A stretch of DNA of 64,000 bases from Pocillopora damicornis (GCF_003704095.1 NW_020843568.1:186001-250000); one strand, 5' to 3'. Positions 34,385 through 42,200 are shown, counted from the first letter of the stretch. Notes: generated from the letters alone by a model not told the origin. Numbers and translations: made by a program.

Positions 34385-37300
34385 TCAGCCGTAACAAATT
34401 AGCTTTATAACATTTTTGAGCTCGTTACTAACACCACTGCTACACCCGCCATCATCTTCATCGCGACGTCGACGCCGACGGCGGTCATCACATTCGTCAT
34501 CACCATCATCATCACGACGACGACGACGACGACGTTTGCGGTCGTCGTCGTTATTGTCTTCGTCATCATCGTCGTCACAGCACTTGCCTCCTGAACTGGG
34601 CTCGAACGTCAGAATAAGAACGCGGTCATTTTGCCCGGCAAGTATTCGAAGCCCAGGGATGTTGATTGAGTTAGCTTCGCCTATTCCTAGGCCGATAACT
34701 CTTGCATTGAAAGTCTGGGAGGAATTAAACAGATATCATTTTAGAACTTAGACAGGTTAGAGTTGTTAATCTAATTCTCATTAGGACCAACAACAATTCA
34801 GAGAGTAGTATGTAAATTTCCTGAAGCACTAGGAGACGCGTTTTTTCAATTATCTCATTGTTTTGATTTTGCATTTGATAGGAGGTGTGCGGGTTTTTCC
34901 AGACCAATGTCATCACGCATTATTCTCGAGTTCGGTAGTCAGTTAAAAATTTCTCCTTATTATTAAGAGCAAATCGAGATATTGCAAACACTGACTGAAA
35001 GACTTGCAATGATTTGAATTTATCGTTCAACAGTGTTGAACGGCCGTGCAACAGTCGAAGCTTCGCGATTAACAACTGACAGCCACTATTACGCCATGAA
35101 AGGCAATCAGGAGTCCAATTTCTGAACACTTTTTTCGCTTAGAATCCGGAATCCATAGCTGTGATCCTTTTTTATAGTCATCCTTGCTCTTATTCTCTCT
35201 CCATATCTCCTCCATTGGGAACGAGTTTTTTGTTATAAATAAAGATTGAAATTTAAAGTTTATGTGAACTTAGATTGGAACTGAATTAATACGAAATCAA
35301 ATGAATTTGAAAGGTTGAAAGGAATGGAATGGAATCCGGAATCCGAACAAGTGGAATATGGAATTCAGTGCGATTTGCAATGTTACAACTGGGCTAGTAA
35401 ACACTACAACATTACTAATCATTTCCTCAACTATACTCACATCTCTCAATTCTTGAGCGGGGAGAACAAGTGAATCAGTTCCATTAAAATTAACACCATC
35501 AGTTACAAAAACGACTACTTTTTGTGCTGTATCACGGTTTGCGGAGCTAAGTAAATCCTTAGCTTCTTCTATTACTGTATCTATCACTGTAGAACCAGCC
35601 GTAAATTGTAAGCCGTTAATCTGTGTCTTAATCCCAGATCGAGATGTTGTTACTTTATCACTGAAGCTTGATGCCAGACTGTTAATCCGGTCATCAAAGG
35701 CTAAGACGATGACCCGCGCACCAGATGTTTTGGAGATTTTGATGTTATCCACTAACGTCGACAGAAATGTCTGTAGTTGTGTGAATTGATTGTCGTCCAT
35801 GCTGCCAGACACATCTGCTGCTATTATGATGTCTAACTTCTTACTGCATAAATTTGCTGGGAAAGGAAAGGAAAGGATGAATCAGTCATAGAGCATGGTT
35901 GACAGAGCTCAAAACATATAAAGTAAGCCCAGCCAAAACACATATCTCTCCACACTTTCTTGTTGTTAATCATTGCCGGTCCAAGAAGCAACATGCAGTA
36001 ACCTTTACTCTAAAGAGTTCACCGCATATAGAGCAGTTTTCAACTGATCAAGTTTCAAAAAACCAAGACCAAATTAGTCACAACTACCACTTAGAGCAAA
36101 GGTTTCCGTCATCATGAAACCAGTGAGAACTTAACGTAAAAACAGACAGCCTGGTTGAGACGCGAGAAAACGCGAGTGACCAAGTCGGGATTGGCTATAC
36201 TTTCCTTGGTTACAGTTTGATTGGTTGAGATTGTGGTGCAAGATCAAAGTAAAGCAAAACCAAAGCAATGCAGGATCATTTTCGATACTCAATTGAAAAG
36301 TGCTCTATCTATCTTTTCAGTTCAATCCGGTTTTAGTAGGTGGCCCAGGGAAAAAGGAATGTTTTGCCCCCGAACTGAAAATCATAAGTGGGTTATGTTA
36401 TGATTGAAGCAAGACAAGGGAATTGTTGTCATAAATTGAGACACTTCAGCCTTCAAATTTGCTATTTTCATTTCATGAAAAAATGAGATGGTTGAAATTG
36501 AACACGGACCAGAGTTCATGTATTCGTGACAAGAAGAAAGTCTTGGCTGTCTTCTACCATAACAACGCCAGCTATATCTGTTTCACTGACGTCTTGGAAG
36601 AGTGGCTAGCACTAAACTCTAGTATGTTTATCTTAATAAGAGTTATGACATCAAAGACGGCACAAAAATGTGCCAGGCTCGAGGAACTTGGCCAATATAA
36701 GGCAGTTCAAACGCCAAGGAGAGTGAGTAGCATATTTTTCATTATAATTTTCTCCAAAGTTCAACCTATTTTCAGATGGCGATAGTTGTCTATCGCCACA
36801 CCCAGACACATCCTTGAAAACTTCGAAAACCATTGACGCTGATTCAATGTTTCCAAGCGATATTTCGCTCATAGGAAGAAATTTTCACTGCTCATAAATT
36901 TTGCACGTGACAAGAACACGTTCACAATCAAATATTATTAATTACAACAATATGAGACCTTTTATGAAAAGAAAGCACGCTTGACCTGGTGACTTCACGA
37001 TGCCTTTTTCAAAAGAATACTTTTGTGAAGAAAAATATTCAAATTGATTTTAAAGGTGAAACATATTACCTGTAGTGTTCAAAATAATACGTAGCTTTAC
37101 CAATGTCTCGGAGTCTAGTAACATAGCATGCGTAGTATCTAGCTGTGTGCAGTTTGACACTCATCACAACAGCTCTAACGAAACAGAATGCATGACTTTT
37201 CATGACTGAGTTATTTCGTCTTCATACACTAAAAATGGATTGAAACATGAACTTATCGAACATACATCAAGTATATATACTGTCAATCCGCTGGTGATAA

Positions 37301-39137
37301 AAAAGGAAACTGTTTCGAAATAATTGTAGGATTTACTGCACCAGGACAGAACCGATCTAGCAGTTAAAAAAATTATTAATGTAACTTGGAAATTATTTTG
37401 ATCCCAGAATGACCTTATTAGCCTTCCAAGTTGTTGTTTGTTGTCATATTGTGCGGAATTTGGGTAAGCTAAATTATTTTAGTTTCCACTGATAAAACAT
37501 CAGATTATGTTCCCCTATCCTTCTATGAATAGCAACTTCCTTTATCAGTGATTGCACGTCATTCCATGCACTGTTAGACTTAAATTCCACCATATCTTTA
37601 AACTTACTAGTATTTAGTTGCATACCAAAGTGTACATCATCATTTATTTCTTTTCCTTGTCACGTGAAGCTTTGACTGGGCTTCAGGATAGCATTTCTGA
37701 CTAGTGACTGAGTCAAAATTGTGGTTTACCGCGGCACTTCTGTTAAAAATAAGCTTAACTTCTATTTCCGGCGGTGGTTCCAAATCGAGCAACAACAGTC
37801 AAAGGGATTTCCTCTCTCAGATATTGAAAGGAAACACCTGTGTAGTTTTTTTTAATCAATAAGAAGAAGTTATATGAGTTTAACGGAAGCGAAGTTCCAG
37901 AAGTTTCCAAAACCACTAACAAAAGAAAAGTTAATTTCACCTCTCAATGAGTTTCTAATTGTATACTCTTTCAACTTTTTAAACTTTTCAACCTGATCGA
38001 GGTAATGTTGCAAAAAAACCCCTCTAACATAATATCATAAATCGATTTAAAAACTTCAAAAACACACCAGAAACACACAGGCATTTTCTTATTCAAAGAG
38101 TATTTTTGGTATATATTTTCATAGGAAAGACACTTGATATTAGCACCCTTCATGGCTGAACAATACAAATACTAGAAGACTGTTTATTTCGTTGTTACTT
38201 TTTGGTTTATCATATCTTTCAAAGAAGGGATAAACAAGTTTGCCAAGCTTTTGTCGTATTTACCAAAGAGGGAGGCATCAAATTCAAGTTGCTAGATTCA
38301 CTTTCCCAAACTGGGCCGCGAAAGTCCATCGAAGTCCATTGGACAAAAATGACGATATCATAATAACCTTCATTAGTTGATCAATAAAAGACTGATTTCA
38401 TTCTAGGATTAAATATTTGCCTTATTGCAGGAACTGAACCAATTCGTTATTAGTTCTAATTTTATCTACAACCTGAAAACTATGATAGAAATCGGCACCT
38501 GAAGGTGGTTAATGGCTCCGGAGAAAAAACGTTTACATAACTTAAGAACGAACAAAGTTCCTGTCACGAGTGCAATGATCATGCGTCTTCAATTTGCGCC
38601 TTTACAAAAACACTTAAAGCTGAAAAAGACTTTTTATAAAGACTAATTATAATTAACTTATCTAAGAGGTCAATGATAAATCTGTTATTTTAGTTGCCCC
38701 GCCGACGCTATAAAACAGTCTCTTTAGAAACCCAATTCTCACCGCATATTTAGTTCCCTCTCAGGGAGGTAATATCCTTGAATAGATACGACTTTGAAAT
38801 TTAACTTTTTCGCCAAGCCAATTTTCAGGTAACTGGTACACGACAGCATCATACAAAGCCAAAAAACTTGCGAGTGAGTTAACAGACTAAATGAACCCAG
38901 AAATAGGATAAAACTATCACTTTTATAAAAGCATGTACTCACCTCCTACTTCTCCGCTAACACACAAAATCACAAGGATAAGAGCAGCGCCTACAACTAA
39001 GAAGTTAAAAAACACAGAAAGGCGTCAAAATCATTCCCTAAAAACCTGCACTTTACGCCTTGTATATGTGAAGCTTGTTTATAAATCCAGCCAAGTTATT
39101 CTGCGATAAATAAAAACATCTTACTTTTCCTCGCCAT
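34385..39137 (-). CDS. Secreted single-VWA protein (about 270 aa) with an alternating poly-Asp/poly-Arg insert. Exons: 39137-39125, 38996-38943, 35856-35441, 34714-34385
   Basis: Phases 1,1,0 join to give MARKIVGAALILVILCVSGEVGA-NLCSKKLDIIIAADVSGSM...GSTVID...VFVTDG...ELRD|TFNARVIGLGIG...VLILTFEPSSGGKCCDDDDDEDNNDDDRKRRRRRRRDDDGDDECDDRRRRRRRDEDDGGCSSGVSNELKNVIKLICYG*. The two 5' exons are less certain than the two VWA exons. Confidence 0.82.
36029..36307. mobile_element. TA-flanked MITE (Tc1/mariner-type ends) in an intron of the second VWA gene
   Basis: TAGAGCAGTTTTCAA ... TTGAAAAGTGCTCTA: 15-bp inverted ends with one mismatch. Confidence 0.6.
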
Positions 39138-39224
39138 GCTGAATTTCTGCCAAGACGGCAACTTTCGTCTAATATCTACAAGCTCTACTGCAGTAATAAA
39201 TGGGTCACATTTTATTCTAGTCTA

Positions 39225-39232
39225 CTTTTATA
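39225..39232 (-). promoter_or_regulatory. Candidate TATA box of the second VWA gene
   Basis: TATAAAAG about 90 bp upstream of the inferred ATG at 39137. Confidence 0.5.
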
Positions 39233-42200
39233 TTGAACCAACCCGCAAGCACTCAAAATCTGTCATTTACTCTTTCTGTCCAATAACCGGCCAGTATTGC
39301 TGCACTCGTCTTTTTATCTTCCTTTCCGCGAACGTACGCGTTTTAATAATAGATACAAGCGAATATTTCATGGGAATATCAATTTTTCTTAATGACCCAG
39401 TGTTGTTATGTTGCATAATTCTGTTTCCTGTAGATTTGAATGTTGTGGATTTCTTTCGTTCTTTTTTATTAAATTGTACTGGTGAAATTACTCAATATTA
39501 GCTAAATATTTGCAACTTAAGGAAAACGTCATCACCTTTCAAGATAGTGGCTCTTTCAAACAACTTTGAAGAGGACATCGTGATGTTCTCAAATTTTTTT
39601 CGTGGGAAAAATTATGTTCAATGATGACCATTCCTCTGGTAATTAAAGATATCAAAAATATATCTACTGTTTAAATAATGCAATTTCTAGTTCTCTGTGT
39701 TATTATGCTGTTGAAACTCTATTCAAAGAAAAGAAAGGGTTTTTTTTTAACTTTGGGTACAGAAGTACAGTTATATTGATTGTCCAAAACGCATGAGAGC
39801 AGAGCTCTCACGTTCTGTAGGTTTACCGGCGTTGGAACCCACGCCAGATGTTGTTACACGGAGCAAAATGCAAGGTTTGTAGAACAAGAGCCGAAATGTG
39901 GGTTATTCATATCGGAGTTAAGTGTCCGCCCAACTAGCCTAAGAGGGTTGTTCATGCTGGTAAACCGATAGAATAAGCATTCTTCTGCTTTTGAAACTTT
40001 TAGTTTTCTATGATCTCACCACTTTAAAAACGAGACACATTTTGACCAATAACTGCATGGAGTTGCTCAATTATTTCGTGATTTAAGACGGACTTTCTGA
40101 GAGGTTGTCCAAATTCAATTACTGCTGCTCAAATTATAAATAACAACGATATAAATAATTGCCTTTATTCTTTTCAAATCATAACAATTACCAATTGTTT
40201 AAGCCAACGTAACAATCGTCTTTCCTTATTCAATTTTCTCAGGTGTATTAAGACAATTATCGGCTAATCAGAAATACAAAAAGACCCCCCTGAATGATGC
40301 GTTCAACATATTTCTAACCAGGGGAGTTTTATCACTCTGGTCTTCAAGGTGTCTTACTCTGTTATGGCCTGTAAAGTTGGAAAAGTGATCTATGAATATT
40401 TAATTTTATTTTATGGTAGACACGAAGAGGTTCTTCACCAGACTTAATAACCGCTTAGGTGGAACACTTCAGTAACAATAGAAGTTATGTCTCATTCACT
40501 AATTAGCGTCAAGATCGGTGAGGGTGAATCGTTTAAGAAGTAACCTGAAAATTTGCTCTAACTCAGTTAAAGGTTGAAAACAACTGATCAATGGATCCTT
40601 TGCAGGAATGCTGTTTACATATGCAATTCTCTGGTCAAAGGCTGGTTATTTATTTTCTAACGGTATGCATTACTTTTAGTTCAAGGCAGACGTTTTCGTA
40701 AAACAATCATTCATTTTCAATGCAAGGTAGACATAACATTGCTCCTATTGTTCAGCTCTCATACTTTACGGTTGGTGCAGCGAAGTACATCACTCCATGA
40801 AAGACTATTCTCTGGAACATTTATTCACAATAATCACTTTTTCTTGACATTCGTTTGTTTAGACACTAGACACTCACGGCTCTGGTATTTCAGGTCGGTC
40901 CCTTTACGTAACACTACATATACTCAGCAATATCTTGGATGGTTTGTCCGGTAGATGCTAAGGAAATTAAACGCTTTGCCGCTCTATTCATCCGCTGGCT
41001 TTCTCAAGCTGAGTCAGCGAACACCCACTTCGATTACATAAGAGCAGCTACGGAAAATTTTGAAGGGTTTGTATTTGAGAGTGCCATAGGAAATTAACGG
41101 CCTTGGATAACTTGTTTTTTTCGAAATGCCTCTGCCTTTTATTACCGTCTATTCGTTTTTTACTTAACAGTTTTGTGGTGAACTTTCAGCCAATTCCCTT
41201 GGTTTTCAACTCTCTCCGAAATTCCTAACCCATAAAAGCGTGTAATCAATCATTTTTGATATTTTCGACGTGATCACTTTTACGCAACATAATCTTCACC
41301 TGCTCGTTGGGTCTTGAGCCATTTCCTTTCCTGAAGAAACGCCTATGTGAAGAACCTGTTGAATATCCAGCAGCACTGTTTATTAAAAAAATTATTCAAG
41401 GTGCCAGCTACAGTTACGAAACGCGCATAATTTTATGCCTCGCCGTGTTTCGAAATGATCCTGTTTCGATATCAAACATCAACAACATATTTGAAGAAAG
41501 AGTCCTACATCTACCGTAGGCATCCGAATATTTTCGCAAATTATGAAGCAACCTCGCCCCTTGATCAGCTTGAAAAAAAAACTGATCATTTGACCAACGA
41601 CATTGATCTGTCCTTGTCGTGCTTGTCCACACGAAAATACAGTGGAATCAGTTGTTTAGGGCCAATATAATTAATGATTGCCTCTTAACGGCTCACATAT
41701 GATCATAAATTAAATTGTCGATTGTTTGATAGTTGATTGAGTTTACAGAGTAAAGTTTGACATGATCTAAGCACGTCAAAACTTCGTTAGTGGACTGCAA
41801 TTTCTTCAATTCCATGTGACGAAAAAAATGCACGTGCATGTTGAACAGCAATGAGTGATTTCGTTCATTATAAAATTGAATTCTGCGATGCGTGATCGTT
41901 AATCAATGCTTTTTTCCGTTTTTAATTAGGCAAGGAAAATGACGTTGGCACGAAATGCTATAAAAATGGCGTTCCCTTCCGCTCTGCCCTCCAAATACTT
42001 TTTAAAGAGATTTTGGTAGGTCTTGAATGAATGTGAACGTGTTGGGAAATCATAAACCATGACTTTTTTTCCTTTCCGTCACGAGATATCTTAATGTCGT
42101 TAGTTTCCCTTTGGAATTTTTTAAGTCAATGATTGCGATCCTTAGAGTAAAGCTTTAAAACAGCATGTTACCTATTTTATGGTCAAAACCGCACTCCAGA

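Follow-up and report, generated by a model that had tools for sequence, protein, structure and literature searches.

A Cys-bracketed loop of alternating Asp and Arg blocks in a secreted, skeleton-associated VWA protein of pocilloporid corals

We analyzed a 64,000-nucleotide stretch of the Pocillopora damicornis genome (GCF_003704095.1, NW_020843568.1:186001-250000; hereafter the window) and focused on a minus-strand exon at 34385-34714 that encodes the end of a VWA domain and, within it, a loop of alternating acidic and basic blocks. The original prediction, made from the DNA alone, had described this exon as hidden, since it is missing from a list of open reading frames (ORFs). Translation of the minus strand across 34385-34714 is open, with no stop before the terminal codon, and yields exactly the peptide described, including the cassette that runs from GGK-CC to GG-C-SSG. 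The frame escapes the ORF list because it contains no ATG, GTG, or TTG. However, the exon is not new: the spliced product is identical to RefSeq XP_027043919.1 (P0179, "uncharacterized protein LOC113671858", P. damicornis), and exon 4 is therefore already annotated.

Gene model, VWA fold, and charged loop

RNA contigs and reading of the sequence give a gene of four exons on the minus strand that encodes a 270-aa protein (Table 1). To document splicing, we aligned Logan contigs from four poly(A)/cDNA RNA runs, drawn from four studies, to positions 34000-39999 of the window. The 34714/35441 joint, which had been proposed as a check, was carried in three of the four runs, with GT..AG borders on the minus strand and in phase 0. 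The other two joints also have GT..AG borders on this strand; 35856/38943 was present in all four runs and 38996/39125 in two (X17 and X19). RNA depth over the exons was approximately 100 times that over the introns. The contigs extend to 39178/39180 at the 5′ edge of exon 1 and, at the other end, continue 233-433 nt past 34000 into the 3′ untranslated region (UTR). No joint that removes the loop insert occurred among the contigs of the four runs. A cryptic in-frame GT..AG pair at 34583/34440, whose use would excise 144 nt of the insert, was used by no RNA contig, although contigs can miss rare forms. Exon 4 is single-copy in the genome that we searched (a 234-Mb assembly of 4393 contigs), where its nearest paralog is at most 35% identical.

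We carried out whole-protein analyses on database proteins, chiefly P0179, and searched the exons individually. The N terminus encoded by exons 1 and 2 matches P0179, recurs in P0002 and P0170, and is by its sequence a classic signal peptide. Pfam VWA (PF00092) matches residues 31-191 of P0179 with 66.3 bits, against a gathering cut-off of 23.8, and exon 3 by itself gives 49.6 bits (E 6.8e-13). Both halves of the predicted secreted VWA context thus held. VWA is the sole Pfam match, and a chitin-binding domain is absent. In an alignment of 17 relatives, the MIDAS residues S39, S41, T112, and D142 were invariant and D37 nearly so; at the sequence level the D-x-S-x-S...T...D motif is intact, and metal binding is predicted. 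Foldseek returned more than 500 VWA matches in the PDB at E ≤0.001, the best solved structures being mussel PTMP1, TRAP/MIC2, the CD11b I domain, and vWF A3 (E 5e-12 to 2e-10). These best matches to the VWA core (PTMP1, TRAP/MIC2, the integrin alphaM I domain, and vWF A3) are, like the coral domain, adhesion domains of the MIDAS type. They differ from it in sequence, with 15-24% identity, and their matched chains are of standard VWA length.

AlphaFold2, run with 17 relatives, gave a confident VWA core over residues 25-200 (predicted local distance difference test score, pLDDT, >90), a strand at 193-195, an unstructured segment at 203-254 (pLDDT <50), and a last helix at 258-268. Since the segment lies between this strand and this helix, the model places the insert in the betaF-alpha7 loop, the position that the original prediction had given it, and as a disordered region.

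The loop reads GGK-CC, a 12-residue acidic block, R-K-R7, DDDGDDE, C, DD, R7, and DEDD-GG-C-SSG. Its charges are strongly segregated, with a kappa-like index of 0.56-0.64 that was matched by none of 2000 shuffles. The protein contains nine overlapping R-X-K/R-R motifs, all within the disordered loop. These motifs, which had been flagged as furin-type sites, are therefore real and confined to the loop, and as they lie in an accessible region of a protein with a signal peptide, they are candidate substrates for proprotein convertases; cleavage itself is predicted from the sequence.

Table 1. Features of the VWA gene, its charged loop, and the neighboring paralog (window coordinates)
Feature	Position	Strand	Description
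TATAAAAG box	39232-39225		Near exon 1; putative promoter role
Exon 1	39125 to ~39180	-	5′ UTR, ATG at 39137-39135, and first 13 coding bases (MARK + 1 nt)
Exon 2	38943-38996	-	54 nt; signal-peptide hydrophobic core and cleavage region
Exon 3	35441-35856	-	416 nt; N-terminal Cys and VWA betaA to alpha6, with MIDAS D37, S39, S41, T112, D142
Exon 4, coding	34388-34714	-	109 codons; last VWA strands, charged loop, helix alpha7
Insert	34433-34591	-	~53 aa, GGK-CC ... GG-C-SSG; predicted disordered
Opening Cys-Cys pair	34577-34582	-	From codon table
Acidic block 1	34541-34576	-	12 codons, GAC/GAT-rich; length-polymorphic
Basic block 1 (R-K-R7)	34514-34540	-	CGC AAA (CGT)7; convertase-type motif
Acidic block 2, central Cys (34490-34492), and DD	34484-34513	-	From translation and codon table
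Basic block 2 (R7)	34463-34483	-	Mixed codons CGC CGT CGG CGT CGA CGT CGC
Closing Cys	34442-34444	-	From codon table
Stop codon	34385-34387	-	Directly after helix ending LICYG
3′ UTR	33567-34384	-	~0.8 kb; AATAAA near 33581-33576; probable end point
Paralog, exon	26844-27161	+	Signal peptide and Thr/Pro-rich mucin-like region
Paralog, exon	27603-28037	+	VWA
Paralog, exon	about 28704-28862	+	VWA

Orthologs, skeletal association, and distribution of the Arg blocks

The Stylophora pistillata protein XP_022783323.1 is 83% identical to the P. damicornis protein over its full length, with the same length and architecture. This protein is listed, under a misleading automatic name, among those sequenced from cleaned Stylophora skeleton, and later work gave it the name SpiUSOMP12 and presented it as a vWFA adhesion protein (Peled 2020 PMC7115838; Mummadisetti 2021 PMC8086859). 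Acid-insoluble fractions of the skeleton yielded 3-4 of its peptides by liquid chromatography-tandem mass spectrometry (LC-MS/MS), a coverage of 9-11%, and its cross-links put it near the carbonic anhydrase STPCA2 and the acid-rich proteins known as CARPs. Both papers regard the protein as uncharacterized, and the charged loop is mentioned in neither (PMC7115838, PMC8086859). Given the full-length match and the single-copy exon, exon 4 is, as judged from sequence, the end of the P. damicornis ortholog of SpiUSOMP12, and the suggested link to the skeletal matrix holds at the level of this ortholog. The two proteins share a signal peptide, a single VWA domain, six Cys, and a loop in the order CC, acidic, RKRRRR, acidic, C, R8, acidic, C. 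They differ in the lengths of the acidic blocks and in the mix of Asp and Glu, and skeletal presence is recorded for the Stylophora protein. Since the gene and its skeletal association were known already, what is new here is limited to the anatomy of the loop, its phylogenetic distribution, and its pattern of constraint. Our literature search found no entry for the protein in a Pocillopora skeletal proteome and no papers that cite the Pocillopora, Orbicella, or Desmophyllum protein accessions, and the gene was not found in the supplements of the Stylophora cell atlas or larval proteome, where we looked for cell-type or stage expression.

The original prediction had proposed conservation of the blocks and of the four Cys as a check. 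Within Pocillopora and Stylophora the whole architecture is kept: eight sequences share the order CC, acidic, RKRRRR, acidic, C, D-D/N, R7-8, acidic, C, and at least RKRRRR is retained in basic block 1 of all eight. Elsewhere only part of the cassette was found, and the conserved unit is the acidic, Cys-bracketed loop rather than the full cassette. Of eight non-pocilloporid orthologs examined, seven have a Cys-bracketed loop rich in Asp, Glu, and Ser at the same position, with no Arg block, namely those of Orbicella faveolata (P0160), P0182, Desmophyllum pertusum (P0023), Montipora foliosa (P0189), and loci L022, L024, and L026. The eighth, L025, has a short KDDDDDE before the helix and an acidic tail, with neither Cys bracket nor Arg block. 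In this more distant relative the acidic run is placed as a C-terminal tail (L025:5986-6201), so that the acidic module does not have the same position in all relatives.

Loop composition follows the same division. The eight pocilloporid loops contain 22-28 acidic and 14-17 basic residues (net charge -6 to -13), compared with 15-22 acidic and 2-3 basic residues (net charge -13 to -19) in the five other ortholog loops measured, and R-X-K/R-R motifs were limited to pocilloporid loops among the proteins compared. On these alignments the Arg blocks are a pocilloporid novelty, restricted to Pocillopora and Stylophora. Of the named non-pocilloporid orthologs, that of Montipora comes from a complex coral and the others from robust corals. 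Read against the general coral phylogeny, this distribution suggests that the acidic loop predates the basal split of the stony corals.

Other matrix proteins provide partial parallels. Like the CARPs/SAARPs, the Pocillopora protein is secreted, carries Asp/Glu runs, and is associated with coral skeleton. Unlike them, it has no sequence relationship to that family, and it is acidic only in a single loop of the folded VWA domain, where Arg is interleaved. CARPs/SAARPs are recognized by homology together with more than 35% Asp+Glu; P0179 contains 17.5% D+E (pI 4.75), and its Pfam match is to VWA only. In molluscan nacre, the matrix precursor Pif/BMSP combines a VWA domain with an acidic part that binds aragonite, and it is cut after translation (PMC5379566). 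Pif is much larger and has a chitin-binding domain, whereas the coral protein has 270 aa and a single VWA domain and lacks the combination of VWA, chitin-binding domain, and separate acidic product that marks Pif/BMSP. As homology to Pif is limited to the VWA fold, any similarity would be convergence. The cleavage site of Pif is dibasic and Kex2-like, and Pif 80 has a high content of both Asp and Lys/Arg.

The surroundings of the gene contain several further features. Directly downstream, at 30979-32550 on the minus strand, lies a single-exon gene for a 523-aa MFS_1_like transporter (Pfam E 9e-72), and three further coral assemblies (L022, L024, and L026) have the same order of VWA gene followed by MFS gene. 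Downstream of the orthologous VWA gene in L022 is a 30-nt tandem array with PALPRFTPLY-like units (L022:8223-8998, minus strand). A paralogous secreted VWA gene without the acidic loop occupies 26844-28862 on the plus strand (Table 1). Across 28653-28862 the final strand of its VWA domain runs straight into the helix with no insert, in agreement with the earlier description of a short turn. In intron 2 of the VWA gene, many unrelated RNA contigs align partly to 36137-36430, with long loose ends at 36160-36307; this segment looks like a dispersed, transcribed repeat element.

Constraint and DNA-level origin of the blocks

We compared exon 4 codon by codon with the Stylophora-like transcript L023. 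Nucleotide divergence in the exon 4 flanks was 0.164 per site, whereas the 13 Arg/Lys codons that aligned (39 nt), those of basic block 2 included, were all identical in nucleotide sequence. By a rough estimate, the probability of 39 unchanged nt at equal rates is about 0.001. Three of the four Cys codons were identical and the fourth carried a synonymous change. All 12 amino-acid changes in the insert fell in the acidic blocks, where they exchange Asp, Glu, Asn, and Gly. Taken with their distribution among the orthologs, this makes the Arg blocks lineage-specific and strongly conserved. Between 34463-34540 and L023:719-777, the Arg/Lys codons are the same even at four-fold degenerate, CpG-containing third positions, an identity that exceeds what selection at the protein level would by itself be expected to give.

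Within Pocillopora the blocks vary in length. An in-frame deletion of 6 nt at 34514, in the (CGT)7 run, was present in three of the four RNA runs, and a minor form in the contigs carries 48 extra Asp-type nt in acidic block 1. This block also contains two single-nucleotide polymorphisms (34555, Asn to Asp; 34571, Asp to Glu) and measures 9-13 residues across the Pocillopora database proteins. Changes in block length were always multiples of 3. Basic block 2 is not a slipping pure repeat, since it uses four different Arg codons.

The insert is composed of period-3 tracts. As Asp runs coded by GAC are reverse complementary to Arg runs coded by CGT, the region contains the inverted repeats I1-I11, and a direct repeat (D2; 32 nt, 51-nt spacing, 81% identity) joins two acidic-plus-basic units. 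The blocks may thus have arisen from one class of trinucleotide repeat, of which (GAC)n and (CGT)n are the two strands, if part of a (GAC)n tract was locally inverted or copied with a template switch and a 51-nt duplication came afterward. The Stylophora-like transcript has Glu codons in place of many Asp codons, which argues that charge, rather than nucleic-acid structure, has been kept. A functional RNA or DNA hairpin was also considered and rejected: the structures were no better than shuffles (z = -1.7 and -1.6), and the pairing is not conserved in the Stylophora-like sequence. In a pattern search of the 234-Mb genome, the (GAY)3-(CGT)4 junction occurred at this locus only. Long (GAC/GAT)n tracts lie elsewhere in the genome (G000 C1708:151039-151129, C1986:144364-144430, and C3388:214215-214278) and may encode poly-Asp of other acidic proteins.

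A possible role for the loop in calcification

Our preferred model, which we put forward tentatively and rate at somewhat less than an even chance, combines VWA docking, an acidic loop that binds Ca2+ or mineral, and Arg blocks that serve both as convertase sites and as a charge mask. The VWA/MIDAS part would dock the protein to matrix partners, and the acidic loop would bind Ca2+ or carbonate mineral. Pocilloporidae would have gained two poly-Arg blocks and additional Cys inside the ancestral acidic loop. Before cleavage, the Arg blocks would pair electrostatically with the Asp blocks and offset much of the charge of the loop in the secretory pathway. As proprotein-convertase sites, they would then allow cleavage behind each block, leaving acidic peptides that are tied to the domain by disulfides and exposed at the calcifying front. 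Since each predicted convertase fragment keeps at least one Cys, the fragments could stay tethered, and the genome contains at least 15 matches to the convertase P-domain above the Pfam cut-off. Judged on the motifs and charge pattern, convertase cleavage and charge masking are plausible. Opposite charges mask each other until a protease separates them in charge-neutralizing pro-pieces and in synthetic activatable cell-penetrating peptides, which are polyanion-linker-polyarginine hairpins. In both of these the cation is active and the anion masks it, whereas in the coral loop the ancestral, acidic part is presumably the active one.

Several points weigh against this model. Skeletal detection comes from another genus and consists of 3-4 peptides with 9-11% coverage. 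Cleavage, the disulfide tether, and Ca2+ binding are predicted steps. Long L-polyarginines can inhibit furin rather than act as good substrates, and Asp at P1′ and P2′ may slow cleavage. Trinucleotide slippage alone yields multiples of 3 with no need for selection; as slippage preserves the frame anyway, preservation of the frame is weak evidence. Finally, the hairpin between Asp and Arg blocks is not stronger than shuffles (z = -1.7) and the pairing is missing from the Stylophora-like sequence, so that an origin by inversion is only suggestive.

The loop might instead act intact. As an uncleaved blocky polyampholyte, it would self-associate or coacervate outside the cell, or bridge to polyanions such as CARPs, sulfated glycans, or carbonate, and so organize or stabilize amorphous precursor phases. 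The extreme charge segregation, the predicted disorder, the cross-links of the ortholog near highly acidic CARPs, and a pattern of constraint in which the Arg blocks are strictly conserved and the acidic blocks retain only their charge all fit this explanation. However, an exposed RKRRRR or R7 would be hard to keep uncut in a secretory protein of an animal with many convertase genes, and non-pocilloporid orthologs function with no basic block at all. We consider an uncleaved loop unlikely, though a serious competitor. Slightly less probable, in our estimation, is a stronger form of the masking model in which poly-Arg would hold the mineral-binding poly-Asp peptides in a neutral, disulfide-stapled hairpin during transit of the Ca2+-rich secretory pathway, a convertase would unmask the tethered polyaspartate at the calcifying front, and the Arg blocks would have come from a one-step inversion of (GAC)n.

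A further explanation is that the blocks are a tolerated by-product of an (ACG/CGT)-class microsatellite that was inverted and duplicated in a permissive loop, where only overall acidity matters. The period-3 structure of the blocks, the reverse complementarity of the GAC and CGT runs, and the length polymorphism within Pocillopora (the 6-nt deletion, the 48-nt longer form, and 9-13 Asp) are all expected of such a repeat, and loop length and sequence do vary freely among corals. Yet the Arg blocks and four Cys persist from Pocillopora to Stylophora, with 0/39 nt changed against 16% divergence of the flanks; block 2, with its mixed codons, is not a repeat that slips; the Glu-for-Asp codons of the Stylophora-like sequence keep the charge and lose the DNA complementarity; and the Asp/Arg junction is unique in the genome. 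Thus, we regard a by-product as quite improbable. Least probable is an allosteric switch, in which the state of the loop (zipped or unzipped, cleaved or intact, Ca2+-loaded) would tune alpha7 and MIDAS affinity as in integrin I domains: although the modeled betaF-alpha7 position, the intact MIDAS motif, and the integrin I domains among the best structural matches are in keeping with it, the bracketing Cys probably staple the base of the loop and would decouple its excursion from alpha7, which the usual pair of N- and C-terminal Cys would also hold.

It is an open question how acidic proteins that bind Ca2+ strongly are kept inert in corals on their way to the calcifying space. Here, in a skeleton-associated protein family, an ancestral polyaspartate loop has become interspersed with conserved polyarginine convertase motifs in a single family of corals, and close relatives without Arg blocks are natural controls. 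With 270 aa and one domain, the protein offers a compact, testable system for charge masking, proteolytic activation, or polyampholyte behavior in biomineralization. At the DNA level, the loop would be a clear case of a coding trinucleotide repeat that gives opposite charges from its two strands. If poly-Arg does hold poly-Asp in a neutral hairpin until cleavage, and if the Arg blocks did come from a one-step inversion, the mask would be an invention of the coding microsatellite itself.

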